From sequence record MG655269.1: 64,000 bases of DNA; one strand, 5' to 3'. The notes beneath the pieces are model-generated. The model saw only the letters and a program-made list of their open reading frames with translations. It made no database searches and was not told the origin of the DNA. A program made the translations under genes and the position numbers. This document shows, piece after piece, positions 5,418 through 62,801 of the stretch (positions are counted from its first letter, which is position 1; the number at the start of each line of letters is the position of its first letter).

Positions 5418-5446
5418 AGGAGAGCTTCGGCTCTCCTTTATGCCGG
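5418..5446 (+). terminator. Hairpin (C-UUCG-G loop) + TTATGCCGG element
   Basis: AGGAGAGC-TTCG-GCTCTCCT then TTATGCCGG, 8 nt after the stop at 5409. Confidence 0.8.
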
Positions 5447-5681
5447 CCAGGTTTTCCACCCATCTCCTCTATCGGACAACAGATATAGATAGCGTCTGAT
5501 CAACGTCATTGATTACACTTTATTCTACGACCCCAACGTAACCTGTCGACATTCATAAGGGAATGCCACACCGTTGTTTATGTACGTCCTTATAAAAGAA
5601 GCGACCAAGCAAAAGACCAATAATCCGCAAACCTTCTTTAAACCAAACCTATTCTCTTTTCTTATTAATCTGGAGTGTTGT

Positions 5682-6014
5682 ATGGATTTCTCATTTCTAC
5701 TTGATCAAAACCCGTTGAGCCATTACAAAAACGAGTTACCGGCCTTAGTCCGTGAACTTAATGGCTCGATGGAAGATGATGCCCGTGTTTCCTGTGAAGA
5801 CGCACTGAATGCGCTGGTGCATCTCTTTGCAACACCGGGTGAGCTCATCAGCCTTACTATTCAACGCCACTGTAGCATTGCTGAGCAGAAGCTGCGCTAT
5901 ACGGCAAAGTTCATCAATGACACGGTGGCCACGGTCGAAGGACCTGAACCAATGGATCTGCGCTATGTGCTAGGGACTGCAGTATTTAACGCCATTACCA
6001 TTCCTATCAAATAA
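5682..6014 (+). CDS. Hypothetical protein (110 aa; start refined from 5574)
   Basis: ATG 5682 is in frame and preceded by ATTAATCTGGAGTG (GGAG RBS); the same leader precedes 35777. Confidence 0.7.
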   Translation: MDFSFLLDQNPLSHYKNELPALVRELNGSMEDDARVSCEDALNALVHLFATPGELISLTIQRHCSIAEQKLRYTAKFINDTVATVEGPEPMDLRYVLGTAVFNAITIPIK

Positions 6015-6016
6015 AT

Positions 6017-6056
6017 CGGCATAAGAGGAGAGGCAAATGCCTCTCCTCTGTTATGC
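6017..6056. terminator. Bidirectional hairpin flanked by CGGCATA and GTTATGC
   Basis: Perfect 11-bp stem AGAGGAGAGGC/GCCTCTCCTCT between convergent genes; T10 run follows at 6063-6072. Confidence 0.8.
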
Positions 6057-6075
6057 TACTTCTTTTTTTTTTGGT

Positions 6076-8934
6076 TTAGAACGTGAACTTCGGGTTTTTC
6101 GAATCGTCGTCGTTGAAGTCGTCATCCGTCGGATCTTCAAGACTCGGGTCAGCGGCATCATCATCATCCGGATTAGTGGTATCGTCCGGGTTCTGTATGT
6201 CATCTGGGTTCTGCTCATCTACCGGGGGTTCGTCGCCATCGGTGGGTGGCGTCGGCATGGCAAACGGGTCAGCTTCGCCCTCATCCGGTGGAGCATTCGG
6301 ATTAGCAGCGGTATCACCCAACTGCTCATCTTCCTTCAGCTTATCGTATTTACTCTGCAGCTTCTCTTCGACTTTCTTCTTATCTTTCAGATACGTGAGA
6401 ATGCCTTCCCAGACATTTTCATTGTAGCTGATGATTTCAGAAAGCAGGGCAGCGGTAGCGTTAGTGTCTTCACCCAGATCATTCAGGATTGCGTATTGCT
6501 GCGCATTACCGGAATCATCCATCCACTTACGCATGTACATTGCCACCAGAGACTGACGCCAGGTTTCCAGATCCTCTTCAGAACCATCCAGGAACTTGCC
6601 TACCACAGCATCTGGGAAGCGGTCATTGATGACAGCCTCAGTGTGTTCACGACGTGTCTGGTAGGCACGGGTGATCTCTTCCAGGTCGGTGGTTTCAGGT
6701 TCAGGTAGGGTGACGATGATTGAGTTAATGAAGTTGGTCAGCAAACGGGCTGCAATCGCATCTTCATCCTTAGCAACATCCGGGTTATTGGCTTTGAAGT
6801 CCTCAAACATCTTCCTGCCTTTAGCAGAAGACGGGCTCCAGAGATTCTTGTTGTTATGAATGAGGTCATACAACTCATTCATCAAGTTACCGGATTTGGC
6901 AGTCAGTTTACGCACCAGGTCAGAGGCATGACCACACACCACACGTTGTGACACGGTGATCTCTTGCGAGTACAGCGCATCGTTGTTGATGTGTTCGATG
7001 GCAAACTTGATGTCGTTCTGCGACGAGATGAGTTCAGGACGAATCCCCCACATCTGTGACAGGAACTCCATCAAGCGGTCATTCCACTCCGGATCAGGTG
7101 GGGTGATATCACGCTTGCCGTGAGAGATATCTGCATCAATCGACGGGTAGTGATCGTTACCACTGGTCTTTACAATCACGCTGGCACTGTCAAGGATGTT
7201 ACACACATCACGCGGGTTCTTGGCGCCGATGATCGAGGAGAGACCAAGGGTGGAGTTCAAGTGCGTGGTGATCACATCTTCGATGGTGTTTTCTGGCTCT
7301 GGGTCATCCTCATCCAGCGGGATGTTCAGGGTGGTGATGTTCACCGAGTTCGCAACGTTAGCAAGTGTAGTAGCAATGATGTTGGTCATCGCCATCGACG
7401 CATACAGACGTGAGCGGTCTAACAGAGAACGACCAATACCAAACCGGTTGTAGTCGAAAGCGAAATAGGTCATCGCTTCTTCTGGCAGGTACAGGATACG
7501 GGTCTGCAGGTTACGGCAAGTACGGGCAAACATGATACGCATGACTTCGTTGGTTAACCCCACGGTCATGGTCTGACCATAGGTGCCATTAGCCAGGCGT
7601 TGCACCAGATCTTTCTCCACTTCTTCGACATACTTGTTGTAGAAGGCAGACGTATCAAAGGTACATTTATTACCCGACTTCATCTCCGCCGCCATGGCAA
7701 TGATGCCTTTGGTGCTGTCGATAGCGCTGTTGGTATCCTGACGGTTCTTCATCTGATCTTGATAGAACTGATCATTCTGCGCCGTACGCACCGGGTTACC
7801 GTGTTCATCCAACAGAACGAAGTAACCCACGCGGTGTTTAAAGTCACCTGGGACGTGTACTGGGATCACACACTCTGAGGGCAGGTGCATCAGTAATGGC
7901 TGACCAACGTTTTCTTTAGACAGCTCGTCGTCACGTCCGACCGTGATGTTGTTGGTCGCTACGTAATCACGCTGTTTAAAGAGGTCGTTGTAGACATTGC
8001 TGTACTGCTCATCCGTTAACACCGGCGTCTGGGCAACTTTGCTGTCTTTGTCCTTACCGCCTTTTGCTTTCGCCCCACCTTTGTCTTCCAGTGCTTCCAT
8101 GCCGGCACGACGCAGACCTAACGGGATACGGTTCTTCTTCGACAGGTTGTGGCGCGCTAACGCCAGCTTAAAGCGCGGCAGACTTAACACCGCATCGTTA
8201 TCGGTGATGGTTAGCCCTAGCTCATTTTTATTATCACCATTCAGATGGTGCATGGTCATAATAGGCGTTTCGCCACTCATCAACGATTCGAGTGACGCGG
8301 TCATCAGCATATTAGAACTACCTGGGTTACCCAGATAGCCACGAGAGCGGAACTGTTGGGAGTGTGCGTCGTAGTCATCAGCAATTGCTTCCATGCCAGA
8401 GCCACGGGTATAACCGTTAATCACGTTATCCAGTGACGACTGGGAAAGCACTGCCCAGGCTGAGGAACCGGTCTTAAATAACATGTCCGGAACGATGTCA
8501 GCAAGTTTGTCAGTAATTTTATAGTTCTTTTCTATGTACTCCCGCACTGCGCTGATCAAAAGACTGTTAAGCTCTGTGTTCTTACCTTCATACGCTTCTG
8601 TGGTATAAGTCAGGGAGACCGTGCGTAAGTTACGCGGAGAGAGAATAGACGCCGTAAGGATCTTACACGCCTTTAAGGCTCCGGGTACACTTTCCATCAA
8701 TTCGGTATTCGAGTCGATACTGGTACTGGTCAGTTTGGAGATGTTTTGGAGCATCCCTGCAGAAGGACCACCATCCCGGTTGGAGCGTCCTGTACGTTTG
8801 GACGTATCCCGCGGTTTGTTGTCCTTCGGAACCAGTATGTCAATGATCGCTTTTGTCGCAGGATCTTTATTGAGTAAATTCAGTTTTGGCGTAGCAGCAC
8901 GGCTGTTACCTGCCAAGCGATTCGATTCGGCCAT
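6076..8934 (-). CDS. Portal protein (phiKZ gp129-like) with acidic C-terminal tail
   Basis: Start refined to MAESNRL (CAT 8932-8934, GGAG RBS). HLPSECVIPVHVPGD..VGYFVLLDEHGNP block and a size of ~950 aa fit the remembered phiKZ-family portal. D/P-rich NPDD tail. Confidence 0.75.
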   Translation of the reverse strand: MAESNRLAGNSRAATPKLNLLNKDPATKAIIDILVPKDNKPRDTSKRTGRSNRDGGPSAGMLQNISKLTSTSIDSNTELMESVPGALKACKILTASILSPRNLRTVSLTYTTEAYEGKNTELNSLLISAVREYIEKNYKITDKLADIVPDMLFKTGSSAWAVLSQSSLDNVINGYTRGSGMEAIADDYDAHSQQFRSRGYLGNPGSSNMLMTASLESLMSGETPIMTMHHLNGDNKNELGLTITDNDAVLSLPRFKLALARHNLSKKNRIPLGLRRAGMEALEDKGGAKAKGGKDKDSKVAQTPVLTDEQYSNVYNDLFKQRDYVATNNITVGRDDELSKENVGQPLLMHLPSECVIPVHVPGDFKHRVGYFVLLDEHGNPVRTAQNDQFYQDQMKNRQDTNSAIDSTKGIIAMAAEMKSGNKCTFDTSAFYNKYVEEVEKDLVQRLANGTYGQTMTVGLTNEVMRIMFARTCRNLQTRILYLPEEAMTYFAFDYNRFGIGRSLLDRSRLYASMAMTNIIATTLANVANSVNITTLNIPLDEDDPEPENTIEDVITTHLNSTLGLSSIIGAKNPRDVCNILDSASVIVKTSGNDHYPSIDADISHGKRDITPPDPEWNDRLMEFLSQMWGIRPELISSQNDIKFAIEHINNDALYSQEITVSQRVVCGHASDLVRKLTAKSGNLMNELYDLIHNNKNLWSPSSAKGRKMFEDFKANNPDVAKDEDAIAARLLTNFINSIIVTLPEPETTDLEEITRAYQTRREHTEAVINDRFPDAVVGKFLDGSEEDLETWRQSLVAMYMRKWMDDSGNAQQYAILNDLGEDTNATAALLSEIISYNENVWEGILTYLKDKKKVEEKLQSKYDKLKEDEQLGDTAANPNAPPDEGEADPFAMPTPPTDGDEPPVDEQNPDDIQNPDDTTNPDDDDAADPSLEDPTDDDFNDDDSKNPKFTF

Positions 8935-8966
8935 TTTAAAGAGGCTCCTTGCAGTGGGAGAATAGC

Positions 8967-11342
8967 ATGAATTTAAATGTGGACTATACAATTTACGTGG
9001 ATAACACCAAGAAGCTTATCCGCACAATGGTCATTAATTCGGCTCAATCAGCTAATATAATTAACGGCCGTATGGATGGCTTGGGGTACGGTCGTGACAT
9101 CTACGACAAGAGTACCTGGAAGTACTACATGAACATGGCCGGGATCTACCATCCGTCCAATGACCCGATGCAGGTGAAGTCACTCGATAACGGTCAGCTC
9201 ATCGACTTTACCCGTGAGAACATGGAGATCCATGTCAGCACCAAACGCAGCTACCAGTACGGCACCGACTATTATAAAGCCCTGGTTGCCCAATACCCGT
9301 ATCAGATCGCGCTGATCAAGGGGATCTTAAACCCAATTGATCTCAGTGTCTCAACCACCGCCGATGACTGGCAGATCCTCTATTACGATAAGACGCTGGT
9401 AGAAGACGGTGAAGAGAACCTGATCCCCCGTTTCCAGGAGTGGGTCAACACCCTGATCACCCAGACCTATCTGCCGGACTATGTCTACATCACCGAAGAT
9501 CTGATGCACCACTTCTATCTTTCCTTAATTGGTGGTTTTGGCCCTGGTGTGATCCTGGGGATTCGCTTAGAGAACATCAAAACCAACCGGGCACACAGCT
9601 TCCATATCTGGTCGCACATTCTGTCGCATGCTGATATTGAGCAGTATCGTCCGTACCTGAACCGCAAACAGATCCTCTATCTGTATCGCAACATTGTGTG
9701 GCATACCCGCAACCCAGGTGCGCAATACTCCTTCCAGAAGATGATCGACGCCTTCTTAACGGAACGCCGCATCCCATTACAGTCATACAACGCTCAGCAC
9801 AACACCTCGAGCATCCTGACCAAGATTAAACCCGAGGTGGAGTTCAAGCGTGAACTGTTGAACATGCAAGATGCGATTGCCAATGTGAACTATGTGCGCA
9901 GTACCCGTGAGATCCTGGAAGATGAAGTGCCGCTGGCGAAGAACAACGCCGATGTGTACGAAGACCGAATCGGGGAAGTCATTCAGGATGTTGGGACTAA
10001 CCGCAACAGTAACCTGCCGACCAAAGTGTTGGAATCCAACATGCGGGATCTCTCTGACTCGCTGCCGTTCTCACACTCCCTGACATTACTGAACGAATGG
10101 GTGCGGTTGTCCTCTACCGGAATGTACACCGCAGTGATCACCACCACCAACCCCAACACCGGATTGACCATGACCATGACAGTAAAGGAAGCGTTCATCC
10201 TTTACCTGTACGGTGTCTGGCAAAGTCACGGGGTTAACTTGGAGACGATCCCGACCTTCCGTGCCAATATGGTAATGAAGATCCCTCGGCCACAGTTTGC
10301 GTTCTTAAAAGCACAATACGGCTCGCAGCACGTCACTGACGAGTTCATCAAGTACGCCCTGAATCTCTGTCCGGATATCCCGGCGATCATCTCAACAGAA
10401 ACCTTCTATGCGAAGACACTTGAGATTAATGCCGCGACCCAGTTGCACCGGGATCTGTACAGCTACCGTAACCACTATCATGCACGGGCAGAATTCGAAG
10501 CCCTGGCCTTTGGTTTCTACCAAGATCAGGATTGCGACATCAACTCCGGCATGACGTATAAGGAGTTCTTCAAACAGAAGGGGTGGAACTTCACTGACTT
10601 ACCGCCAGAAGAGTGGGTGGTGTTCGCCAACAAGGTCTCCTCCATTGCCACCGGGTTGGACACGGCTAACCAGCAGAAGCTCGCGGATATTCAGCAAGCC
10701 ATGTTGGGTCTGACCATGCAGCTGTCCAGTTACACCATTCAAGTGATCAGGAAGATCAATGAAGAAGCGGTGGTGATGCTCGACTGGCCAACCTTGCGTG
10801 GGGGCGACATGCACATGAAGGTCTATCAACAGTGGCACTTGGTAGATAACCCTGTGCGACCGATTGATACCCACATGCGTGAGAAGAAGACCTACAAGCT
10901 GATCCACGACTTCCCGAAAGGCCATAACTCGGTAGAGCGCAGCTGGCGCTTCTATATCGACACCGCACGGCAGTTAAGTAGTCAGGGAATCAACTCCCGT
11001 TACAACTATTTAAACGGCGCACGTATGCGGCTGTGGACGGCTGACGATGCGGCGGGTACCGAGAACGAGTTTGACCAGCAGATGACCGTGAAAGATCTGC
11101 AAGGTCTCTGGATTGACCCGTACGGCGATGCCCGTCCGCCGGCTGACTTCAGTGCAGAAGTGTTGAACGGATTGTGGACTGATCCGTTACCCGGGATTGC
11201 ACCAATCGTTAGTAGCTTGGGTGGGTTGTGGATCGATGGTCCAAAGAGCAGTGGTTTTGATGAGGATCTCAACGGACTGCATGCCGAAGTCCCTGCGGCA
11301 TTACAAGCCTTACGCAATACCCCGGGTGATAGCGCCACGTAA
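8967..11342 (+). CDS. Virion structural protein, probable baseplate component (phiKZ gp128-like)
   Basis: Start refined to MNLNVDY (GGGAG RBS). WKYYMNMAGIYHPS and HSFHIWSHI motifs; divergent from the portal gene as in phiKZ-like genomes. Confidence 0.7.
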   Translation: MNLNVDYTIYVDNTKKLIRTMVINSAQSANIINGRMDGLGYGRDIYDKSTWKYYMNMAGIYHPSNDPMQVKSLDNGQLIDFTRENMEIHVSTKRSYQYGTDYYKALVAQYPYQIALIKGILNPIDLSVSTTADDWQILYYDKTLVEDGEENLIPRFQEWVNTLITQTYLPDYVYITEDLMHHFYLSLIGGFGPGVILGIRLENIKTNRAHSFHIWSHILSHADIEQYRPYLNRKQILYLYRNIVWHTRNPGAQYSFQKMIDAFLTERRIPLQSYNAQHNTSSILTKIKPEVEFKRELLNMQDAIANVNYVRSTREILEDEVPLAKNNADVYEDRIGEVIQDVGTNRNSNLPTKVLESNMRDLSDSLPFSHSLTLLNEWVRLSSTGMYTAVITTTNPNTGLTMTMTVKEAFILYLYGVWQSHGVNLETIPTFRANMVMKIPRPQFAFLKAQYGSQHVTDEFIKYALNLCPDIPAIISTETFYAKTLEINAATQLHRDLYSYRNHYHARAEFEALAFGFYQDQDCDINSGMTYKEFFKQKGWNFTDLPPEEWVVFANKVSSIATGLDTANQQKLADIQQAMLGLTMQLSSYTIQVIRKINEEAVVMLDWPTLRGGDMHMKVYQQWHLVDNPVRPIDTHMREKKTYKLIHDFPKGHNSVERSWRFYIDTARQLSSQGINSRYNYLNGARMRLWTADDAAGTENEFDQQMTVKDLQGLWIDPYGDARPPADFSAEVLNGLWTDPLPGIAPIVSSLGGLWIDGPKSSGFDEDLNGLHAEVPAALQALRNTPGDSAT

Positions 11343-11374
11343 CCGGCATAATGAGGGGTCGTCACTGACCCCTC
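11343..11374 (-). terminator. Hairpin + TTATGCCGG element in minus orientation
   Basis: CCGGCATAA lies left of the GAGGGGTC/GACCCCTC stem; both flanking genes are on +. Confidence 0.6.
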
Positions 11375-11421
11375 AAAAGTAATCCTATGTTTACACCACC
11401 TCTACGCCTAAGGAGAACCAC

Positions 11422-12297: not shown

Positions 12298-12312
12298 CCG
12301 AGGAATCGCATT

Positions 12313-13131: not shown

Positions 13132-13151
13132 TCTGTTGAAAAGGAACAATA

Positions 13152-14027: not shown

Positions 14028-14042
14028 TGACACGGGGGTGAC

Positions 14043-16099: not shown

Positions 16100-16153
16100 C
16101 AGCATAAAGACAGAGGGCCTCCGCAAGGAAGCTCTCTGTCTTGTTTATGCCGG
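16100..16153. terminator. Bidirectional long hairpin flanked by CAGCATAAA and TTTATGCCGG
   Basis: AAGACAGAGGGC...GCTCTCTGTCTT stem with a GCAA inner loop between convergent genes. Confidence 0.8.
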
Positions 16154-24049: not shown

Positions 24050-24074
24050 GGGGGAGGTGACTCCCCCTTTCTTT
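24050..24074 (+). terminator. Intrinsic terminator between the two long fibre genes
   Basis: GGGGGAG-GTGA-CTCCCCC then TTTCTTT. Confidence 0.7.
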
Positions 24075-24090
24075 ATTGAAAGGAGTTGCC

Positions 24091-27000: not shown

Positions 27001-27546
27001 CGCATCGAAACCTTCGAATTGTCAGCTACCCACATTGGGTCGGGTATTCCGATCACGACAGGCGTGCCGTCAACCGCGGGTAACTTTGCATGGCGTAATG
27101 GTTACTTGAAACTGATGAGCTTTGCAATGCAGCTGGACTATAATGGTATTGTGACAGTGAATCTGAGAACGGGTGCGGTAACCATTGAAATGAGTGTCTC
27201 TGGTACACCACCAGATTCTGTGAGCAGAACAAGAACACAGACTGTCTGGTCTACTGGTGAGACCTGGGTGCCTGGTCTGGTGACGGTGGGGACCGAAGCA
27301 TCAGGGGCAAGCGATGCATTCAATACGTACGCGAGTACATCGAAAACCTTCCCAGCTCTGGCGAGGTCAGATATCGCAAACAGTACTGGGCTTGCAGTTA
27401 TGATGGGTAACGAAAGTAACCCAACTAACAAAGGCGTCTTTACTCAGCAGCCAAGTGCAGCCAATGACTATACCCTTAAGTGGAAAGTCACTGATACACC
27501 GGGTGGTGCTGGCGAATACACCTTTGATCTGTATGTGAAATACTAA
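24091..27546 (+). CDS. Long tail fibre / receptor-binding protein with an extra C-terminal module
   Basis: Start refined (AAGGAG RBS); HQARRDNVH repeat, FGSLSFLPPDVSGSFEG, family C-domain, then 150 additional aa. Confidence 0.8.
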   Translation: MSSNLVVEPGSWGEFYASIEALTWKLQNSRYSQYDLASTVMVNFENDVDDLVTSAQTLLASHQARRDNVHQVNAEQLGFGLVDNFKTATVAQAGEGGYPNLFVTPQGFNALASKVFADFGSSLHHQGINPISSFGSLSFLPPDVSGSFEGSGQVSGNSASPMIIEDDGTLVGLRYGTTGTTEGLYYFYLPTAEDRIDNASVIRTNFKYAPANLPAGAYCTDVYNTESDVLLGNIKGSSSYNWFISITNGTFDATKHNTAYFTINGDPDLAYLGKYSTALVVNGYVYIFGMLDDGFTTNRPIGGELKNTNPIDMVVWRVAVSSIINNNAVTLEKISAWSTKDIWGDTTSNPRIQLSKIAISENAADKPYVQVNGALVRSVIVRNAQRRLFAVVDPSNPNRIRLAVNHTFYAQLSTGSSYNGSCALSLLLDLTAKTAVVEDNANRILVGVNGQTVTVSGNTLLTDNLLTGSALGGNWHPNVTLTSRGYLFCRTSGNQPDENPRFSKGLITNFTTRFEAMRIRSRQVRQITLVTDPLVTGTALTNNFMKPQYLAGNALLLTSNPYKTPGYYAYGTTKRVLLTGSPTFNYTLNSGVTLQGWAPNSNRYEITDANNPPRNRFYHIITQVDSAGNVTSSPSVLSDGSSAQVGTSIDANLNITGSITFNQAELNTVAKAACQTALGAAPSLWRGLIYVPQDTAVPLIMVCTGEVLRSDGNGYRVNHSLVELTYTGARSGNITGYTVKRVLNSQLNDQQPTGVPLELACNGGLNIYKTAAGDYLLGIGEPTFHQTYGGIYGYVWYAAIKAGTGTIEDSSLKAFNHGYYPTSVNPTPVVVPGYGLCVMDYQTQQANANALMIVDVMAATYAEFVAWTSKRKLVLTAQQVEQGYLVYFTAPTQVFMAGNEYTLPAGNIDLRTITANPASKTFYVYVQLVDEQVQYLITLDQLAPTITLMYIGKITTNTTQISSIAVDKRIRIETFELSATHIGSGIPITTGVPSTAGNFAWRNGYLKLMSFAMQLDYNGIVTVNLRTGAVTIEMSVSGTPPDSVSRTRTQTVWSTGETWVPGLVTVGTEASGASDAFNTYASTSKTFPALARSDIANSTGLAVMMGNESNPTNKGVFTQQPSAANDYTLKWKVTDTPGGAGEYTFDLYVKY

Positions 27547-27597
27547 ATCGGCATAGAGGGAGAGGTGTTAACCTCTCCCTCGTGCTTTATGCCGATT
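27546..27597. terminator. Bidirectional hairpin with perfect AATCGGCATA/TATGCCGATT flanks
   Basis: 11-bp stem GAGGGAGAGGT/ACCTCTCCCTC between the convergent fibre and spike genes. Confidence 0.85.
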
Positions 27598-32744: not shown

Positions 32745-32754
32745 CCTACATTAC
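32745..32754 (+). promoter_or_regulatory. Candidate early promoter core CCTACATTAC
   Basis: Identical 10-mer at 40045 and variant at 58583, all after AT-rich tracts upstream of accessory gene blocks; resembles the phiKZ early TATTAC core. Confidence 0.45.
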
Positions 32755-35253: not shown

Positions 35254-35285
35254 GGGAGGGGCGCAGGTCTCTCCCTTTTATGCCG
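35254..35285 (+). terminator. Hairpin + TTTTATGCCG element
   Basis: GGGAGGGGC-GCAG-GTCTCTCCC then TTTTATGCCG. Confidence 0.75.
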
Positions 35286-40044: not shown

Positions 40045-40054
40045 CCTACATTAC
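40045..40054 (+). promoter_or_regulatory. Candidate early promoter core CCTACATTAC
   Basis: TCAGACCTACATTACGT matches TCAGACCTATATCACGT at 58578-58594 (15/17). Confidence 0.45.
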
Positions 40055-40404: not shown

Positions 40405-40414
40405 CTTACTTCTG

Positions 40415-40444
40415 GGGTGAGTGAAAACTCACCCTTTATGCCGG
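40415..40444 (+). terminator. Hairpin (GAAA loop) + TTTATGCCGG element
   Basis: GGGTGAGT-GAAA-ACTCACCC then TTTATGCCGG. Confidence 0.8.
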
Positions 40445-41672: not shown

Positions 41673-41680
41673 TTACCTAG

Positions 41681-41713
41681 CCCAATCAGTGCAGCCGCTG
41701 GTTGGGTTTTCTT
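41681..41713 (+). terminator. Intrinsic terminator
   Basis: CCCAATCAGTG-CAGC-CGCTGGTTGGG (with G-U pairs) then TTTTCTT. Confidence 0.65.
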
Positions 41714-41738
41714 ACGCTTCATTATAAAGGAAGACATC

Positions 41739-46230: not shown

Positions 46231-46551
46231 ATGAACAAGAAAAAGCAAGTTACGATCTTCGTGGCGGGTGATGTCAATTCAGCTAAGACCACGGTCATTG
46301 CCATTATTGAAAAGGCGCTGAAAGAAGCGGGTCTGGATGCCAAACTGCTTGCGCATGCAGCGGCGGATGCGGAATATTTCGTTGGCGTAAAAAGCGCGTT
46401 AGAATATATTCCAGAGATCAGCGATAAGGTCGAGGTCTCCATTGAAGAACTCACCCGCCCAGCACCGACCAACGATGATGGCTCGCGCCCTGAGAGTTAT
46501 GTGGCGATCACACATAGCGCCGGCATCAAGATCCTTCCCCGTAACAGCTAG
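46231..46551 (+). CDS. Hypothetical protein with a P-loop-like motif (GDVNSAKT)
   Basis: N-terminus resembles 36537; start refined to ATG 46231. Confidence 0.7.
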   Translation: MNKKKQVTIFVAGDVNSAKTTVIAIIEKALKEAGLDAKLLAHAAADAEYFVGVKSALEYIPEISDKVEVSIEELTRPAPTNDDGSRPESYVAITHSAGIKILPRNS

Positions 46552-46556: not shown

Positions 46557-46586
46557 AAGAGGACTTCGGTCCTCTTTTATGCCCGG
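46557..46586 (+). terminator. Hairpin (UUCG) + TTATGCCCGG element
   Basis: AAGAGGAC-TTCG-GTCCTCTT then TTATGCCCGG. Confidence 0.8.
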
Positions 46587-47568: not shown

Positions 47569-47574
47569 GAACCG

Positions 47575-47603
47575 GAGAGGCGCATAGCCTCTCTCTTATG
47601 CCG
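47575..47603 (+). terminator. Hairpin + TTATGCCG element
   Basis: GAGAGGC-GCATA-GCCTCTC then TCTTATGCCG. Confidence 0.75.
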
Positions 47604-50031: not shown

Positions 50032-50039
50032 ACCATCAG

Positions 50040-50065
50040 GGGGAGGGAAACCTCCCCTTATGCCG
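50040..50065 (+). terminator. Hairpin (GAAA) + TTATGCCG element
   Basis: GGGGAGG-GAAA-CCTCCCC then TTATGCCG. Confidence 0.8.
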
Positions 50066-52806: not shown

Positions 52807-53397
52807 ATGGAGAGGATAACATTAGCTTGGCTAAGAGCTAATCAAGGAAGGAAATCTCTGGAAGATCGTTTGTTTCAATTCGGTCACGTTTATAGTGAGA
52901 GAGATTCCTGTTTCACCTGGCGTGGGATGGTGGATAATTACGGCTACGGAAAGATAAAGGTTAAAAGTAGATTGGTGGGTGCACACAAACTGTCTTATCT
53001 GCTATTCAAAGGGGATATTCCAGAAGGTATGGTAGTTAGACACACGTGCGATAACCCAGTCTGTATTAACCCCTCTCATTTAATCGCGGGTACGGTAAAG
53101 CAAAACGTTCATGATGCAATAGCAAAAGGCCGTGCTTCTTTTCAGAATGTTATCAATTCATCGGTATGTAAGTTTCTGCCGGCCAACGCTATTATTATGG
53201 TAGATAGAAAGATAGGCCCACTACTATGTTATGCAACAACCCGGCGATTAGCCCTTGCTGATAATTCTAAAGTTTACTGGGGTCGTCCGTGTAGGTCACA
53301 CGGCATGCCTTGGAGAAGAACCAGTAATGGCGAATGTGTCTATTGCAGACACGAATACCGAGCAGGTGTGAAGTATACACCTAATGGAAAGAGGTGA
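52807..53397 (+). mobile_element. Free-standing HNH homing endonuclease with a C-terminal Cys/His zinc-finger
   Basis: VVRHTCDNPVCINPSHL...QNVHD (HNH); CRSHG...CVYC; AGA/AGG/ATA-rich codons unlike its neighbours. Confidence 0.85.
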
Positions 53398-53550: not shown

Positions 53551-53581
53551 AAGGGGTGGGGTAACTCACCCCTTTATGCCG
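53551..53581 (+). terminator. Hairpin (GTAA) + TATGCCG element
   Basis: AAGGGGTGGG-GTAA-CTCACCCCTT then TATGCCG. Confidence 0.8.
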
Positions 53582-53596: not shown

Positions 53597-53929
53597 ATGC
53601 AGGAATTCTTCAAAAGCTACGGCACGTACTTCTTTGATGTACTCATGTTTATCATGGTGTTCGCCTGGTGTTTCTGTGGCAGTGGCGGTACACGTCATGA
53701 CAAAAACAAATGGTTGCGTTACGGCGCACCTGTTGCACTTGGTCTTTTTGTTGTGCTGGTCGTCCACGGGTTTGGTGCATTTGATCGTTATCTGGAAAGG
53801 AATAAGTGCGCTGACTTACCAATAGGTATCGGCGTAATGATTGAAGACCGCTGCTACAAGCGCGTTGATGGACCCGTGTACATATCCGCCGACAGTACCG
53901 TGTACAAGGAGAGCAATGTACATGACTGA
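53597..53929 (+). CDS. Small membrane protein (2 TM + Cys pair)
   Basis: Start refined (AAGGA RBS). Confidence 0.7.
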   Translation: MQEFFKSYGTYFFDVLMFIMVFAWCFCGSGGTRHDKNKWLRYGAPVALGLFVVLVVHGFGAFDRYLERNKCADLPIGIGVMIEDRCYKRVDGPVYISADSTVYKESNVHD

Positions 53930-54125: not shown

Positions 54126-54128
54126 CGG

Positions 54129-54156
54129 GAGGAGGCTTTGGCCTCCTCTTATGCCG
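54129..54156 (+). terminator. Hairpin + TTATGCCG element
   Basis: GAGGAGGC-TTTG-GCCTCCTC then TTATGCCG. Confidence 0.8.
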
Positions 54157-54778: not shown

Positions 54779-54788
54779 GGAACCAAAC

Positions 54789-56205: not shown

Positions 56206-56947
56206 GAAGTGCTTTGGTGCGTCGTCTGTCTATAAAGAAGATGACGGCAGTACACGCATTACCGCTGACCAGTATGAACTTACGCTGGGTCGATCCTACC
56301 ATCCTAAGCTCAAGCGTAAGGTGGGTCGGGGATTTGGCTTCTATGTCGAAAATGGCGAGAAGCTCGAGTTCGTCTTGCGGGGTTACTGGTTTGTGTTGAT
56401 CGCCTGGAGCAAGAAGCGCAAATCACTCAATTGGGACGAAGCGGAAAATGCACCGACCTACGGCTTCAATGTTGTCGACTCTGACTTAGCGATCTATCTC
56501 GGCAACGAATCCGCTAAGTCAGACAAACACATCAGCATGCGTAGTCGCAGCAAATACATCCCCCTGCCCTGGGCCTGGGTCTTCCATAAGCGTGAAGTGT
56601 TAACCACCCGTGACACCTGGGCTGATGTCAAAGAAGGTGCGCTGTCTCAGGGGTGGTCGTTCCCCGCCACATACGTCACCAAGCACAATGAAGTGCAAGA
56701 GATGATGATCGAAGCAACGATGGAGCGCATGACCTGGCGCCTGGCATGGCTCCCTTGGTTCGCACCGGTTACCAAGAAAGACCGCTCGGCAAGTTACAAA
56801 TACCACGGGAACGGTGGTAACGGGGTTGGTCACGATGCCAGTGGGTGGAAAGGCGGGGTCATCGGTGGTGGGGTCATCATGCGGGATAATGAGCACAACC
56901 CGAAAGAAACATTCGACCGTTTAATTAAAGAGCAGCATTACGGCTAA
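56183..56947 (+). CDS. Hypothetical phage protein (SGWKGG motif)
   Basis: 254 aa; the start could also be 56198. Confidence 0.7.
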   Translation: MILTAMFKKCFGASSVYKEDDGSTRITADQYELTLGRSYHPKLKRKVGRGFGFYVENGEKLEFVLRGYWFVLIAWSKKRKSLNWDEAENAPTYGFNVVDSDLAIYLGNESAKSDKHISMRSRSKYIPLPWAWVFHKREVLTTRDTWADVKEGALSQGWSFPATYVTKHNEVQEMMIEATMERMTWRLAWLPWFAPVTKKDRSASYKYHGNGGNGVGHDASGWKGGVIGGGVIMRDNEHNPKETFDRLIKEQHYG

Positions 56948-56959
56948 GAAGGAAAGCAC

Positions 56960-58111
56960 ATGCGTCAGTATTTGGATGGGATTCGTTACATCTTTGAGAA
57001 CGGGTCACAACGAGGGGATCGCACCGGGGTAGGTACGTTGTCGGTGTTCTCGATGAAGCAGACTTACGATCTGCGTCTGGGATTCCCACTGGTCACCAGT
57101 AAGAAAGTGCGTATCGATTTTATTATCGAAGAGCTCATCTCCTTCCTGTCGGGTAACCCTGATATGCCGGGGGTGGGTATCTGGGATGATTGGCGTGTCA
57201 AAGACGAAGTCTCTCGTGAAGTCCCGTTAGAGAACCACGAGCGTTTAAAACTCTGGGTTGAGAAGTCGGACCTGAAGTATAACGTTGCTTACCTTCAACT
57301 CAATGCGATGGGTTCTGTCGAAGAGGGCCATCGTTTCCTGGATGAGCAAGGGATTCCACGTAACAGAAAAGAAGTACTGGTAGCAGAAGGTGCACTCAAT
57401 GCACCCTATGGACCAGCGTGGCGTGCGTGGAAAGGTCGTCTGGGCGAAGTGCATGATCAGATCGGTTATCTGCTCAAGTTGCTTAAAAACAATCCTACGA
57501 GTCGTCGTATGCTATTGTCTGCCTGGGACCCAGCGAACATGCCGGATGAGTCTATCAGTCCGCAGGATAACATCATTGATGGCAAACCATGTCTGACTCC
57601 GTGTCACTGGGCGTTTGAGCTGTACACTGACGAAATCCTGGCAGAGGAACGCCTTGATTGGGTCGAAGCTAATGCACCTAGCCTCTGGGAAGACTACAAT
57701 GATCGTTCAGGACGTGGTCAGTGGTTAGGCGACACAGACAGTAAGCGCCTTCATGAATTCCTGGACGAAGCCGGCGTACCGAAGTATTACCTGGATCTGA
57801 AGTATCACCAACGTTCCTGTGACTATATGGTTGGCGTGCCGTATAACATCGCCAGCTATGCGGTGTTGCAGCACATGTTCGCCGCCACCTGTAACATGAT
57901 CCCGCGGATACTGGAAGCGGATATGACTAACATCCATATCTACAACTTCCACAAAACCAATGCGGTCATGCAGGCCAGTCGCAGCCCACGCGCACTACCC
58001 ACTCTGAAGGTACTCGCCGCTCACGATAAGTTGGAAGACTATACGTTGGAAGACTTTGAACTCGAAGGTTATGATCCGCATCCTTTTATTAAATATGAAA
58101 GAGCGGTCTGA
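56960..58111 (+). CDS. thyA: Thymidylate synthase with two insertions
   Basis: DRTGVGT, SRRMLLSAWDP, LTPCH (catalytic Cys), QRSCD...GVPYNIASY, HIY. Confidence 0.95.
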   Translation: MRQYLDGIRYIFENGSQRGDRTGVGTLSVFSMKQTYDLRLGFPLVTSKKVRIDFIIEELISFLSGNPDMPGVGIWDDWRVKDEVSREVPLENHERLKLWVEKSDLKYNVAYLQLNAMGSVEEGHRFLDEQGIPRNRKEVLVAEGALNAPYGPAWRAWKGRLGEVHDQIGYLLKLLKNNPTSRRMLLSAWDPANMPDESISPQDNIIDGKPCLTPCHWAFELYTDEILAEERLDWVEANAPSLWEDYNDRSGRGQWLGDTDSKRLHEFLDEAGVPKYYLDLKYHQRSCDYMVGVPYNIASYAVLQHMFAATCNMIPRILEADMTNIHIYNFHKTNAVMQASRSPRALPTLKVLAAHDKLEDYTLEDFELEGYDPHPFIKYERAV

Positions 58112-58143
58112 TCCACTGGTGCGTTGAAGGGAGCACAACGGTA

Positions 58144-58509
58144 ATGAAGAGAGAGTCCAGTTACACCCTGGTCTTTGGGGAAGGTAGTACTGAAGAAGAT
58201 GTCAACACCCTGCGTGAGATGGTGTCACACATGCGGGGGTTGACTGGGTTGTCGCAGCTGGGGGCGTTTGAGGTGTTCGTTACCCATTATGAATTGCAAC
58301 GTAAAGACGCAGGGCTAATCACCAGTAATCTTCCGGTGAATGCACAGTCGTTGTTTGATGTCAGTGATCGACAGAACTGGCTGACACCGCTGTTCACTTC
58401 CCGGGGGTTAGTGGCGTGTGATTTGTTGTTGTTACTGAAGCAAGGCAAATGGACCGGAGAACACCTCAAGGTGACCTTTCGGGTAAAAGGCATCAGGGCG
58501 AAAGCATAA
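58144..58509 (+). CDS. Hypothetical protein
   Basis: 121 aa, GGGAG RBS. Confidence 0.7.
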   Translation: MKRESSYTLVFGEGSTEEDVNTLREMVSHMRGLTGLSQLGAFEVFVTHYELQRKDAGLITSNLPVNAQSLFDVSDRQNWLTPLFTSRGLVACDLLLLLKQGKWTGEHLKVTFRVKGIRAKA

Positions 58510-58515
58510 CGCATA

Positions 58516-58543
58516 CGGAGGGGTCATTCCCTCCGCTATGCCG
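58516..58543 (+). terminator. Hairpin + TATGCCG element (GCATA on the left flank)
   Basis: CGGAGGG-GTCATT-CCCTCCG then CTATGCCG. Confidence 0.75.
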
Positions 58544-58582
58544 ATTAAGTTTTTAACAAAGTTTACTGCAGATCTTTTCAGA

Positions 58583-58592
58583 CCTATATCAC
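58583..58592 (+). promoter_or_regulatory. Candidate early promoter core CCTATATCAC
   Basis: Variant of CCTACATTAC with the same TCAGA 5' flank as the 40045 copy. Confidence 0.4.
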
Positions 58593-58641
58593 GTCGGTGA
58601 ATAACCTTTCACTAATTAACCAATCCGTAAGGAGTTTTATC

Positions 58642-60018
58642 ATGGCTGCATTAAAATCTAAAGTTGAACTGTTTCACTGGTATCAGGAACTGAAAACTGA
58701 ATTTAAAACCGGCAAGATTACCGTGTTCGAATTTGAGCGGCAGGTGCTCAGCGAAATCCTTTCCCTGACCGATACTGGTAAAACACCATCTACTGCCAAA
58801 ATCAGTCTGGTAGTGGACATCCTTAATTCTGTGGTTTTTGATCATGTGTTTACCGCAGACGGTATCATTGACCTGGACAACATGCTCGCTCGTGAACCCG
58901 TACGCAACATTTCGGAATTGACGGCGGCACGCAATAACTTTATTACCATACAAGCCCAGGCCCGTCTGAACAAAGAAAAGGAACAGACTGCGAAACCAGC
59001 AGAGCAGAAGGCATTTGCCAAGTTTCCAACGAAAGAAGAGCTCGAATATTGGGTTAATGCCAGAAAGCTATTCCGTTATGGTAACCCCAATACGCTCGGC
59101 ACTGAAGCATACCAGGAGGTTGTCAAATACTGGCATCTGGTCGATAAATATCTGGGTACATTAAAACTGGAACTGGATCACACCGACCCTAACTACGTCG
59201 ATAACATCCTGTTGATTGACTACTTTGTATCGTTGGTCGCCAAGCAAGAGGTTCCTGAGGAAGAACGCAGGCATCTGAAAGACACACTTAGCAGTCTATA
59301 TGCGTGCTCCATTAAAACCCCACACATCGATGCATTTGTCGAACGTGGCCAACACCCCCTTCCAGTTAAGCCAAAACAACCACCCATCGCGCAACAAGCC
59401 ATCGACCGCGCTATTGCCTGGCGTGAAGAGGAAACCAAAACAAACCATCAGCAAAAAGACATATTACGAGAATTCGCCGATCAATACTGTCCGGTAATGG
59501 TGGCCAAGCAACATGCCACTCAGCAGTTGTTTGATTTCGTTGCTCGTGCGGTGAAACGTGTCTTGACCGCCATTGCTCAGCCAAACAACCCGGAAGACGC
59601 CGAGATGCTGGCAAAAGGTCATGCCATCAACATTCTCAATGTTAAGCATGGTGTAATTGGTGTCAGTACCACGATTACCAGAAACGGTCTGGTCAAGTTA
59701 CGCATCTTCGCTGAACGTGAACTATGTAACGAGGACTACGGTATTCCGACTCTGTCGTATAATCAAGTCCGTCAATCACCTCATGCAACGTTCAGCATAC
59801 CAATGCCGGCGCTGATAGATGGGTTCATTAACATGTGGGATATCCCTAATCAGGCCCCTCGCCATATGCATAATAGCGTAGGCGGTATGTTGGGTAATCC
59901 CTATCCGTTACAGCAGCTTGATGGTTTGATGTCAGCTATTGCAAGAGAAGCAGCCGAGTACGGCGTTACGCCTACTTATGGCATGATCGAAGACAGCCTT
60001 ATCGTTGTGCTGCATTAA
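58642..60018 (+). CDS. Hypothetical protein; N-terminal helical module shared with 60082
   Basis: Start refined (AAGGAG RBS); WYQELKTEFKTGKI and YFVSLVAKQEV...IDAFVER blocks. Confidence 0.8.
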   Translation: MAALKSKVELFHWYQELKTEFKTGKITVFEFERQVLSEILSLTDTGKTPSTAKISLVVDILNSVVFDHVFTADGIIDLDNMLAREPVRNISELTAARNNFITIQAQARLNKEKEQTAKPAEQKAFAKFPTKEELEYWVNARKLFRYGNPNTLGTEAYQEVVKYWHLVDKYLGTLKLELDHTDPNYVDNILLIDYFVSLVAKQEVPEEERRHLKDTLSSLYACSIKTPHIDAFVERGQHPLPVKPKQPPIAQQAIDRAIAWREEETKTNHQQKDILREFADQYCPVMVAKQHATQQLFDFVARAVKRVLTAIAQPNNPEDAEMLAKGHAINILNVKHGVIGVSTTITRNGLVKLRIFAERELCNEDYGIPTLSYNQVRQSPHATFSIPMPALIDGFINMWDIPNQAPRHMHNSVGGMLGNPYPLQQLDGLMSAIAREAAEYGVTPTYGMIEDSLIVVLH

Positions 60019-60025
60019 TTCACAC

Positions 60026-60055
60026 GGGGAGGTTTCCCTCCCCCTTTTATTTTTT
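60026..60055 (+). terminator. Canonical intrinsic terminator
   Basis: GGGGAGG-TTTC-CCTCCCC then CTTTTATTTTTT. Confidence 0.8.
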
Positions 60056-60081
60056 AATTAACCTACTGTGAGAATTTAACC

Positions 60082-60783
60082 ATGAACAAAGAAACTTATA
60101 CTACCTGGTACAATGGATTAAAAGAAAGATTGGCGACTGGGCACATTAATCAGGAACACTACGAGACACTTATTGTTGACAATCTAAGTTCATTGATTAC
60201 TCATTTCTTCAATAGTCGATACGACGATGGTCATATGTCTCTGGAGGAGCATTTTGCGTTAGTTAATCATTATTTCGAACTGGTTGCTGATGCAGAAATA
60301 TCAGAACGCAGTGCCATGCTCATGGTACGTTCTGTAGCTAGCAGTATTCAAAAGCTACCAGCGGCTAAAGCCTTCGCAGAGAAACATAACACTCCGGCGC
60401 CGTCAATTAAAGAAATTCTTGGTAGTCGACCTGGTTTACTGCGTAAGCATGCTGCCAGCACGACCGAGAAGATGATAGGGTGTCCGGTGATCACCCAGGT
60501 CAACGAACCTGAGAACGAAGTAACCATTGAACTACCCTGGAAAACCGCATTGCACGTTTACAAAGGGTTCCTGGTAAAGGCGTTGATGTCAAAGCATGGA
60601 TACAAATACAGTGACGCGTATAACTACATTACTGATCATCAGAACAAATACGACGAACTCTTGGCAGAAGTCCTCAACAGCATTATTGCTAATGAGGAAT
60701 CGCATCTGGTGTCGGTAGGTGGCGGCATCACTGCAGCGGGTACTGGTCTGGCGGTAAGCGGGATTATTAAGCCGGAGGAGTGA
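60082..60783 (+). CDS. Fusion protein: helical module + non-catalytic RNA polymerase beta-prime fragment
   Basis: 60412-60693 encodes ..RPGLLRKH...PVIT...ELPW...K..L...L..K...A..Y...Y...LA......IIA, ungapped against the remembered phiKZ gp55 beta-prime segment KPGLARRH...AVIT...HIPW...ELIAE. No RNPTL or NADFDGD. Confidence 0.65.
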   Translation: MNKETYTTWYNGLKERLATGHINQEHYETLIVDNLSSLITHFFNSRYDDGHMSLEEHFALVNHYFELVADAEISERSAMLMVRSVASSIQKLPAAKAFAEKHNTPAPSIKEILGSRPGLLRKHAASTTEKMIGCPVITQVNEPENEVTIELPWKTALHVYKGFLVKALMSKHGYKYSDAYNYITDHQNKYDELLAEVLNSIIANEESHLVSVGGGITAAGTGLAVSGIIKPEE

Positions 60784-61343
60784 TGAAAGGAGAGATAGAG
60801 ACACGCTTCAGAAGACACTACGGCAACCACATTAAACGGGGTAGTGATATCGCAGTGCCTTTATACCACATTAGTCTACAGAATGACTTGGAGGGGCTAT
60901 GGCGACCTAAAGCCCCTGACTCGCCATTTGATATTCCGAAGAAACCCAGCATCATTACTGAAATGCCGCTCCCGCGTATCTGTGTAGCACCATCTATCGA
61001 ACAGTGCTTCTGGGCAATCTATCCCAATATCTCTAAGCTCTTTGAAGAGGAAGAATACGCAGCGGTTTGTTTTGCGGTTTATCAACCGATCTTGCATGCC
61101 GGTATTGCTGTCGTGGATACCAGTACGTTAACGCAATGCCGACTGGTGCACGATGCACATATTACCGGCGAGCATTGGTTACTTAGTGATACCACCATGT
61201 GTGTGATCGACTTTATTCAGGTTAATAACACCTCACACGGCGAGTTCGTAAAGTTCCATCCGTTTAATACCCCGGTTGGTAACGAATGGGAGCTCGCCCC
61301 TAAAAATGTTGTTTATCATTCACTTAAATTAACGGAGTTGTAA
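60780..61343 (+). CDS. Possible ADP-ribosyltransferase-fold protein
   Basis: LYHIS...PRICVAPSI..C...AI...DAHITGEHW pattern (His strand, late Glu); GGAGG RBS. Confidence 0.4.
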   Translation: MMKGEIETRFRRHYGNHIKRGSDIAVPLYHISLQNDLEGLWRPKAPDSPFDIPKKPSIITEMPLPRICVAPSIEQCFWAIYPNISKLFEEEEYAAVCFAVYQPILHAGIAVVDTSTLTQCRLVHDAHITGEHWLLSDTTMCVIDFIQVNNTSHGEFVKFHPFNTPVGNEWELAPKNVVYHSLKLTEL

Positions 61344-61347
61344 ATCC

Positions 61348-61992
61348 ATGGTAACTGCTAGAAAAGCTAATAAGACCTTAGGTGAGCACGCAGTAGCTCA
61401 TGAGGCAGTAACACGCTTAGGTAGCAACAAGAAAGTCAAACCAGTTAAACCGCTTTGGACACTGGAGAACATCGAGGACAATCTGGTTGGTCAAGGCATC
61501 CTTGCCTACTTGAAACGCCACACGTCGTTATCGATCCGTGATATCAACACCGCGGCTAACCGCCTGACGAAGATTGCTGATTCAGATATAAAGGAAGGGA
61601 AAGCGCGTGATTACGTGGCACGAGTTATTGGGTACAACAATTACGACGCTCTCAACGTCACCGTTCGTGCAGCGGTACCTGTGCGCAATCATGTACAACG
61701 TCGTAAAGCAAATCAGCCGGTCACAGAGTTGTTGATAGAAGACGAAGAACTGCCGCCGGTAACACATACTGAAATCAACCCCTTGGTGATGTTAGCCCTA
61801 CAGCGTGAGATCTCTAAACGCGGCTTTCGTCTCCTTGGTAAGAACTACCGGGCTTTCGTTAACAAGGATAACCCCGAGCACACCTTTACGTTGATGCAGG
61901 CGTACAACTACCTTGCCAAACAACTGGGTTATCCAGACTATCACTCTATGCCCCGTCAATACCCAATCATTAACTTGCGCTACGTCGATTAA
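61348..61992 (+). CDS. Hypothetical protein with a duplicated helical motif
   Basis: ARDYVARVIGYNNYDAL and AYNYLAKQLGYPDYHSM. Confidence 0.75.
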   Translation: MVTARKANKTLGEHAVAHEAVTRLGSNKKVKPVKPLWTLENIEDNLVGQGILAYLKRHTSLSIRDINTAANRLTKIADSDIKEGKARDYVARVIGYNNYDALNVTVRAAVPVRNHVQRRKANQPVTELLIEDEELPPVTHTEINPLVMLALQREISKRGFRLLGKNYRAFVNKDNPEHTFTLMQAYNYLAKQLGYPDYHSMPRQYPIINLRYVD

Positions 61993-62014
61993 CCTATTGT
62001 GAGGAATAAAGAAC

Positions 62015-62764
62015 ATGACGACGACTTTCCCGAAAGAGATGAATGCCGCTTTCCATCCTGATAACGAGCAAACCACTCAGCTGTGCAAAACGATCCAGCA
62101 GATCAGCGGGGTAGAAATCAAACGTGTACATGTGGTGATGGCGATCCACCATTACAAACAAAACGATGCGGCACATCAGCCTGACCACATGCTGGCGGTC
62201 TTAGCAGAAGCAGCCCACATCATCCAGTCGTTTCCTGACCTGGAGAAATGGCGCACCCAGATCATGTTAGGGTGTCTGTTCCATGACACCCACTGTCACA
62301 TCGATCGGGATATGCACCACCTGCTAGGTGCCGAACATGCCCAAGAGGCATTACTGGAGTATGCGTGTGGTTATGGGATGTCACGTGCGGATGTCTACCT
62401 GATCAGTCAGGCCGTACTGGAGCATCGGGCTTCCTGGAAGTACCCGCGTATTAACCCTGTATCCAACGCTGTGGCGTCTGCAGATCGTGGCTACCCTGAT
62501 CTAAAGAAATACATCCGTCGTGCTGTACAGTACCGTTACAAGCGCATGGCAGTCATCAACATGAACACCATCATCGATGAGTCGATCGAACACATGGTAG
62601 AGAAGTTCGGTGATGGCGGTTATGCCTGGGAAAGCTACCCGACGTATGCAGCGGTGATGCACGGTGATGCGATCCAACAAGTGAAGCAACAACTGCGCAG
62701 TAAAGAAGGAAAGGCGCAGCTCAAAGAGTACGCTGAACTCCACTTTGATGAGTGGGTAGAATAA
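62015..62764 (+). CDS. HD-domain metal-dependent phosphohydrolase
   Basis: HQPDH...LFHDT...HHLLGA...EHR...ADR spacing of the HD superfamily. Confidence 0.8.
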   Translation: MTTTFPKEMNAAFHPDNEQTTQLCKTIQQISGVEIKRVHVVMAIHHYKQNDAAHQPDHMLAVLAEAAHIIQSFPDLEKWRTQIMLGCLFHDTHCHIDRDMHHLLGAEHAQEALLEYACGYGMSRADVYLISQAVLEHRASWKYPRINPVSNAVASADRGYPDLKKYIRRAVQYRYKRMAVINMNTIIDESIEHMVEKFGDGGYAWESYPTYAAVMHGDAIQQVKQQLRSKEGKAQLKEYAELHFDEWVE

Positions 62765-62772
62765 GCTACGTG

Positions 62773-62801
62773 GCCGGAGGTAATCCTCCGGCTGTTATGC
62801 C
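62773..62801 (+). terminator. Hairpin + TTATGCC element
   Basis: GCCGGAGG-TAAT-CCTCCGGC then TGTTATGCC. Confidence 0.75.

Follow-up and report, generated by a model that had tools for sequence, protein, structure and literature searches.

Hairpin-TATGCC elements at gene ends of Erwinia phage vB_EamM_MadMel as a probable version of the phiKZ and 201phi2-1 terminators

The closest described counterparts of the element considered here are transcription terminators of chimalliviruses (phiKZ-like jumbo phages). In phage phiKZ, 133 termination regions were located by ONT-cappable-seq, 61 of which share the motif BCCYCCCCHWWDGGGRRGGBYTTATKYYGT (Putzeys et al. 2024, PMC10914365); among the phiKZ terminators are six overlapping bidirectional ones, and 9% of the terminators in the six phages of that study are oriented antisense (PMC10914365). 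The same motif was reported as 'motif A' in 59 of the 132 terminators of phage 201phi2-1 (PMC11512511). Our subject is a 64,000-nucleotide (nt) stretch, hereafter the window, which matches with 100% identity the first 64,000 bases of the 275,000-bp genome of Erwinia phage vB_EamM_MadMel (genus Agricanvirus; MG655269.1), and in which a first-pass annotation had noted 14 sites where a hairpin is followed by TATGCC(G). The annotation proposed a sequence-specific 3'-end signal and suspected that related phages were already known to carry the motif, which the phiKZ and 201phi2-1 publications bear out. We found the observation to be sound and mostly not new: it is the MadMel version of the conserved phiKZ/201phi2-1 terminator, the new parts being a stem of reversed polarity and a wider phylogenetic reach.

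Hairpin-coupled TATGCC in the MadMel genome

All 14 sites proved to be real, with a stable hairpin followed 0-6 nt on by TATGCC(G) or TATGCT at every coordinate. The window total is 17 oriented elements, as the convergent junctions at 6017, 16100, and 27546 carry the motif on both strands, in agreement with the earlier description of it as flanking both sides of such junctions. Plain TATGCC is weakly enriched in the window (38 seen versus 27.75 expected). For genome-wide statistics, which cover both strands of the whole 275-kb MadMel record, we collected hairpins with a stem of at least 6 bp and at least 4 G-C pairs and counted all 6-mers in the next 12 nt with no motif assumed. TATGCC ranked first in this test (49 seen versus 2.1 expected), followed by the overlapping TTATGC and ATGCCG; since the word is weakly enriched overall and comes first after hairpins, the signal lies in its coupling to hairpins rather than in its raw count. 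Altogether 45 of the 70 genomic copies of TATGCCG sit behind a hairpin, and 41 of those 45 are intergenic. We trained a covariance model on 11 MadMel sites of equal geometry, because MAFFT placed stems of unequal length out of register, and accepted matches with E below 0.05. The model gave 54-64 matches genome-wide in MadMel and recovered every one of the 14 noted sites, each face at the three convergent junctions, and a further element across the window end. Control searches returned one marginal match in T4 and two marginal matches in E. coli K-12 (4.6 Mb), and there was no match to the model in Erwinia phage Y2. No Rfam family matched within the 64-kb window.

The anatomy of the element was derived from 59 clean MadMel sites. 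Stems are 8-14 bp long with a mean hairpin stability of -17.9 kcal/mol, and fold z-scores range from -3.4 to -9.7. The 5' arm is purine-rich, as first described, with a mean purine fraction of 0.81 (at least 0.7 at 46 of the 59 sites), and tetraloops, among them the UUCG and GNRA loops already pointed out, close 47 of the 59 hairpins (GAAA eight times, TTCG six times). TATG begins within 0-1 nt of the stem at 39 sites. The tail logo reads T at -1 (53/59), TATGC, then C (45) or T (14), G (44/59), N, Y, and Y, for a consensus of TTATGCCG; the stem is thus followed by (U)UUAUGCC, and the usual tract of about 7 U is absent. All 10 stem pairs covary and 97.3% of alignment cells are paired; double-sided changes numbered 262 versus 66.5 in shuffles (0 of 500 shuffles reached 262), figures computed on a model-fitted alignment, which leans towards structure. 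Because it is nearly identical to MadMel at these sites, phage Deimos-Minion adds little covariation. G-U pairs are tolerated. The first-pass annotation had described the stems as differing in sequence, and this stands insofar as several pair types occur at every stem position; the stems are not arbitrary, as there is a consensus (AGGAGAGGC / GCCTCTCCT) and identical copies recur. The perfect 10-bp inverted repeat reported at 27546-27597 is present as described (AATCGGCATA / TATGCCGATT).

A division into two terminator classes, one with this tail and one with canonical U-tracts, found no support in the tails. At the 'U-tract' sites 24050 and 60026 the tails are TTTCTTTATT and CTTTTATTTTTT, which have the TTAT core with T replacing G; other MadMel gene ends have TTATT, TTATA, or TTATGA, and a T-rich tail lacking TAT[G/T] in its first 9 nt follows just 7 gene-end hairpins genome-wide. 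The two classes look more like a continuum, with tails grading from TTATGCCG to TTATTTTTT.

Over the 59 sites, the T of TATG lies 27-68 nt past the stop codon of a same-strand gene, and the hairpin mostly starts 3-10 nt after the stop. Gene coordinates for the junction statistics came from a simple open reading frame (ORF) caller whose agreement with the MG655269.1 annotation is good but imperfect. The motif was found at 19 of 28 convergent junctions, 11 of them two-sided, whereas the 214 tandem junctions included 28 with the motif in the sense orientation and 5 with it antisense, and the 22 divergent junctions included 2, at least one of which (216673) involves a spurious ORF of the gene caller. 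This pattern fits terminators and not promoters, because the motif points antisense into converging genes and is nearly absent from divergent regions. Orientation does follow the upstream gene as had been stated, with 11343 a true antisense-oriented exception and 120666, outside the window, another. Where a converging gene lies ahead, the reverse-complement word (G)CATA precedes the hairpin at 25 of 29 sites, versus 6 of 29 tandem sites, and on that last count we rejected pairing of the tail with an upstream CAUA as a general feature.

We noted in addition that the 5' arms (AGGAGAGG, GGAGG) resemble ribosome-binding sites and the 3' arms (CCUCUCCU) resemble an anti-Shine-Dalgarno sequence. A hairpin start 3-10 nt past the stop codon would be awkward for coupled transcription-translation and compatible with transcription in a ribosome-free phage nucleus.

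A different motif, cCTAYATTAy, occupies the divergent regions in which the terminator motif is missing. It has 23 copies in the MadMel genome, all on the plus strand and 15 of them intergenic, including window copies at 32746-32753 and 40046-40053 (+). The copies lie mostly 36-213 nt upstream of start codons, with A/T-rich DNA before them, and often 20-30 nt beyond a TATGCC terminator. The motif also resembles sequences adjoining the terminators of phiKZ, SA002, and 201phi2-1, and its probable role is that of an early (virion polymerase) promoter.

Mapped RNA ends in relatives and the reach of the motif

The MadMel tail TTATGCCG is one instance of the phiKZ TTATKYYG. For 201phi2-1, we used six of the eight end coordinates printed in PMC11512511 and fetched the genome around each. 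Every one of the six falls on the eighth nucleotide after the hairpin, a pyrimidine, with G following in five cases and CG at 189,851 (end base in brackets: GGC-TTTATGC[T]G, -TTTATGT[T]G, and -TTTATGA[C]G; GG-TTATATG[C]CG, -TTTATGC[C]G, and -TTTATAC[C]G). The conserved word therefore forms the last 7-8 transcribed bases, in place of a U-tract. In uninfected P. chlororaphis, a two-colour reporter showed termination by these same six elements, which equalled or beat lambda T0, several beating it, except for the weaker 189,851 (PMC11512511). The suggestion that the signal is specific to phage RNA polymerase thus finds no support, as these six elements stopped the host enzyme in uninfected Pseudomonas. 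What holds is the broader claim of a sequence-conserved, hairpin-tied 3'-end signal, given the terminator-like gene context in MadMel, the motif shared by sites mapped with RNA-seq in phiKZ, and the six 201phi2-1 ends inside the motif.

When the post-hairpin k-mer test was applied to other genomes, TTATG and TATGC/TATGT ranked first in Deimos-Minion, phiKZ, and 201phi2-1. In Salmonella phage SA002 the leading words were ATGCC and TATGC, and the 6-mer version missed the motif; orthologous SA002 junctions retain TTATGCCG / CGGCATAA with unrelated stems. Ralstonia phage RSF1, Serratia phage PCH45, and E. coli phage Goslar have clear examples, some two-sided, beside ordinary U-tracts. Overall, conservation extends across six phage genera. 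Searches of whole records with the MadMel-trained model gave 49 matches in SA002, 14 in PCH45, 10 in phiKZ, 6 in RSF1, and 4 in Goslar, counts that understate the true numbers because the model favours the MadMel stem polarity (phiKZ has 61 published sites).

The Agricanvirus genome paper included a MEME analysis, which reported no significant motif and followed none up, and in the literature searched we found no paper describing the motif in Agricanvirus and no statement of its reach beyond Pseudomonas phages to those of Erwinia, Salmonella, Ralstonia, Serratia, and E. coli. The exact strings TTATGCC, TATGCCG, UAUGCC, and UUAUGCC retrieved a single, unrelated paper on small interfering RNA off-targets and no phage paper. 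Among the sequencing runs searched, none was an RNA run for MadMel or another Agricanvirus; two runs of unlabelled kind consisted of low-depth contigs of relatives (85-97% identical), which break near 46540, 47571-47588, and 50037, and we drew no reading from these breaks.

Termination mechanism and rival explanations

We consider it likely, with good confidence, that the MadMel elements are factor-independent (intrinsic-type) transcription terminators of a kind conserved in chimalliviruses and, by analogy with the relatives, TATGCC is most likely a transcribed 3' tail that replaces the U-tract. A phage RNA polymerase would read beyond the stop codon, a strong hairpin, usually with a tetraloop, would form 3-10 nt downstream of it, and the next 7-8 transcribed bases, (U)UUAUGCC, would stand in for the U-tract. 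The RNA would end at the pyrimidine pair just ahead of the conserved G, making TATGCC the tail of the message and not a downstream site, and we infer that MadMel RNAs end at the same place as those of the relatives. Direction would be set by the side of the hairpin that bears the tail, and two-sided copies would stop both converging transcripts. UAU plus R-Y/G may act as a weak-hybrid, pause-like signal, in which UUAU next to the hairpin would give a weak hybrid and the G-C step with its following G would resemble the downstream half of the elemental pause signal. A hybrid of RNA pyrimidines with DNA purines (rY:dR) is weaker than the reverse, and the pyrimidine-rich 3' arm of MadMel would presumably make such a hybrid as well. 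Battaglia et al. (2026 preprint, 10.64898/2026.05.29.728758) argue that bacterial intrinsic terminators, GC(U)7RU, need the elemental pause signal as a 'bubble-edge' feature and tolerate GC at -2/-1. The published ends resolve to 1-2 nt, which leaves the register of the tail on the GS(N)7RY pause consensus ambiguous.

Several points weigh against reading the elements as terminators of this kind. The MadMel elements are known from DNA alone and the mapped RNA ends belong to relatives; those 3' ends, from nanopore data, are resolved to about 1-2 nt, and some of them could be trimmed. The tail holds only 2-4 U, fewer than a classical U-tract. The polarity of the stem is reversed: phiKZ and 201phi2-1 have CCYCCCC ... 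GGGRRGG, whereas in MadMel purines predominate in the 5' arm (AGGAGAGGC) and pyrimidines in the 3' arm (5'-arm purine fraction 0.72-0.81 in MadMel versus 0.35 in phiKZ and 0.40 in 201phi2-1), and the MadMel elements are therefore no mere copies of those already characterised. Finally, TATG is the core of the late promoters of the non-virion RNA polymerase (nvRNAP) and the pocket residues that bind it are kept in MadMel gp2, so that the tail may have a second role.

Several RNA polymerase subunit genes are annotated in MadMel. The product of gp2 (1001-2689) aligns as the ortholog of phiKZ gp123; its matches among chimalliviruses are nvRNAP beta subunits, with 26% identity to those of phiKZ-like phages. 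The late promoters of phiKZ nvRNAP are defined by TATG with G as +1, and the sequences downstream of TATG are decisive for their activity. The published structure has the non-template TATG bound in a pocket under the gp123 beta-lobe, and this pocket is not complete when the complex is transcribing. Across six chimalliviruses, 6 of the 14 published pocket residues (S144, F151, K158, H331, S334, and Q466) are invariant, against a background of 39 invariant positions among 543 in gp2/gp123 (P about 2.5e-4). These facts would suit a relay in which the hairpin ends the upstream transcript and the adjacent TATG serves as an nvRNAP promoter that restarts transcription for the next gene, and at tandem junctions the tail does lie 20-140 nt upstream of the next start codon. 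The relay is nevertheless unlikely in view of the gene context: at the 19 convergent junctions, including the 11 two-sided ones, the motif points antisense into the converging gene with no same-strand gene following, and divergent junctions, which must hold promoters, essentially lack it. In addition, phiKZ P119L and its 201phi2-1 counterpart read TATGTAGA(C/A) and not TATGYYG, the P119L-like downstream context (TATGTAGAC) is not found in the MadMel tail TATGCCG, and the published 201phi2-1 ends at the motif are 3' ends. On gene context and the P119L comparison we rejected a promoter reading of the motif. Separately, at about 270983, outside the window, MadMel has a TTATGCC without a hairpin about 27 nt upstream of gp319, at a site that is syntenic with phiKZ P119L and precedes the gene ahead of the major capsid gene; this copy could have arisen by chance or could be a genuine late promoter.

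We also considered TATG being read by the same pocket for both start and stop, as a 'stop word' of a core enzyme conserved across Chimalliviridae, an idea that we regard as doubtful. An elongating polymerase would re-bind TATG past the hairpin, stall 2-3 nt on at YY before G, and release, in a manner likened to non-template-strand (CRE-pocket) effects on hairpin-dependent pausing in E. coli (PMC4499132). If true, this could also let the polymerase be handed on or restart. Such a 'stop word' is not required, because the relatives' elements also stop the host polymerase.

Very unlikely in our estimate is a tag for RNA processing, stability, or recognition, in which a host or phage protein would cut or bind hairpin plus UAUGCC (for instance for exonuclease protection or mRNA export from the phage nucleus) and the polymerase would not be the target. 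A plain intrinsic terminator would not usually keep a short single-stranded tail so strictly across phages whose hosts differ greatly in GC content. At the two-sided sites and the 6 tandem sites mentioned above, pairing of the tail with an upstream CAUA(A) can make the stem nearly blunt, and the mRNA export route of these phages is not established in the literature. Nevertheless, termination at the relatives' elements takes place in uninfected cells, where phage proteins are absent; in the ChmC eCLIP data, the only relevant set found, the peaks lie near start codons with no sequence motif reported; and no protein partner is indicated by our analysis. That the palindromes are a DNA-level element (a recombination, replication, or packaging signal) lying between genes by chance is scarcely credible. 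At 6017, 16100, and 62773, MadMel and Deimos-Minion differ by inversion of the loop or the inner stem, and the palindromes are therefore recombinationally active; even so, the one-sided tail tracks the direction of the upstream gene, the tolerance of G-U pairs is an RNA property, and the homologous motif coincides with RNA ends in relatives.

Elements of the window and comparison with known systems

The individual elements are collected in Table 1. Our preferred reading of them remains that of terminators with a TATGCC tail.

Table 1. Hairpin elements of the MadMel window, with variant tails in the last three rows
Position	Strand	Location	Features
5418..5445	+	After gp4	AGGAGAGC-ttcg-GCTCTCCT + t + TATGCCG; fold -17.3 kcal/mol, z -4.6; RNA 3' end predicted near 5444
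6017..6049	-	gp5/gp6 convergent junction, minus face, ends gp6	11-bp stem + TATGCCG; bidirectional
6024..6058	+	gp5/gp6 junction, plus face of same hairpin, ends gp5	Tail gt + TATGCTAC, then T-run
11344..11375	-	Antisense-oriented, between co-directional gp7 and gp8	Motif on minus strand only; plus-strand tail AAAAGTAATCC
16100..16140	-	gp13/gp14 junction, minus face, ends gp14	Bidirectional; tail tt + TATGCTG
16109..16152	+	gp13/gp14 junction, plus face, ends gp13	14-bp stem; tail ttgtt + TATGCCG
27549..27581	-	gp20/gp21 junction, minus face, ends gp21	Bidirectional; 11-bp stem + TATGCCG; -32.7 kcal/mol, z -9.7 including paired tails
27556..27594	+	gp20/gp21 junction, plus face, ends gp20	Tail gtgctt + TATGCCG; with 27546-27555 forms perfect 10-bp outer inverted repeat
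35254..35285	+	After gp29 (lytic transglycosylase)	
40414..40443	+	After gp40	With promoter-like CTACATTA at 40046 bounds one-gene transcription unit
46557..46584	+	After gp50	UUCG loop; tail TATGCCCG
47574..47603	+	After gp51	
50039..50065	+	After gp56	GAAA loop
53551..53581	+	About 150 nt past HNH endonuclease gene gp62	
54128..54156	+	After gp64	
58516..58543	+	After gp70	Tail c + TATGCCG
62770..62802	+	After gp75	Tail TATGCCTG
63999..64000	+	After gp77	Start of 18th element; hairpin from 63999, TATGCC at 64021; runs past window end
24050..24077	+	After gp19	Variant; hairpin + TTTCTTTATT; TTAT core, then T
60026..60055	+	After gp71	Variant; hairpin + CTTTTATTTTTT; TTAT core, then T
41679..41716	+	After gp43	TTCTTACG; T-rich, without TTAT; least typical of the three 'U-tract' sites

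Comparison of MadMel with Deimos-Minion showed loops (AAAT/ATTT, TAAT/ATTA) or, at 16100, the whole inner stem swapped for the reverse complement between identical flanks (window 6017-6058, 16100-16152, and 62770-62802), 'flip' events of the palindrome that keep its structure. Some annotated or predicted starts coincide with the elements. As annotated, gp63 starts at 53576 on the ATG that belongs to the TATGCC tail of a terminator, and a likelier start is the in-frame ATG at 53597 with a Shine-Dalgarno-like AAGGA; the longest-ORF starts at 46579 and 50060 likewise begin in terminator tails, and both are annotated in Deimos-Minion. The HNH endonuclease gene gp62 (52807-53397) is missing at the syntenic position of Deimos-Minion, where 211 nt separate the neighbours versus 787 nt in MadMel, and it is a mobile insertion just upstream of the 53551 terminator. 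Outside the window, MadMel 120635-120676 holds a second terminator within a co-directional pair, gp163/gp162 (minus strand), with TATGCTGTTTTT on the antisense face and a TTATTCT variant on the sense face.

The motif maps transcription-unit ends in MadMel and other Agricanviruses, about 60 per genome, to within a base or two, and allows several mis-called start codons to be corrected. Termination by the non-canonical RNA polymerases of jumbo phages seems to be undescribed, and a 2020 review has no section on it; the conserved short tail together with a natural polarity-swapped stem offers a compact in vitro system for this subject. On the practical side, the elements are small, strong, direction-defined terminators.

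The MadMel element agrees with the phiKZ/201phi2-1 terminator in having a GC-rich stem-loop followed at once by TTAT-K-Y-Y-G, in its roughly 60 copies per genome, and in its location just past genes, two-sided between convergent genes and antisense-oriented in a minority of cases. The phages also share virion and non-virion multisubunit RNA polymerases and promoter-like early motifs about 20-30 nt downstream; apart from stem polarity, the MadMel tail (TATGCCG) is stricter than the phiKZ TTATKYYG. With the phiKZ late promoter the element has in common the four bases TATG and, in gp2, an ortholog of the TATG-reading subunit gp123, and it differs from that promoter in its gene-end rather than gene-start context, in having YYG rather than TAGA after TATG, and in its absence from divergent promoter regions. 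Features shared with canonical intrinsic terminators, as described by the hairpin / U-tract / bubble-edge (HUB) model, are a stable hairpin, U/A-rich bases by the stem and, in the relatives, an RNA end about 8 nt past the stem and factor-free action in a reporter, together with a purine-pyrimidine step (G-C) near the 3' end and then G, as in the elemental pause consensus. In contrast to such terminators, there is UUAU only rather than about 7 U, the distal half of the hybrid is G/C-rich, positions -11/-10 in MadMel are pyrimidines and not GC, and the tail is conserved as a word across distant phages. Class II terminators of T7 RNA polymerase, a single-subunit enzyme, are sequence-specific and need no hairpin. 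As at those sites, a conserved sequence word rather than a long U-tract would decide termination, but the MadMel word is a different one, and its hairpin is always present and covarying.

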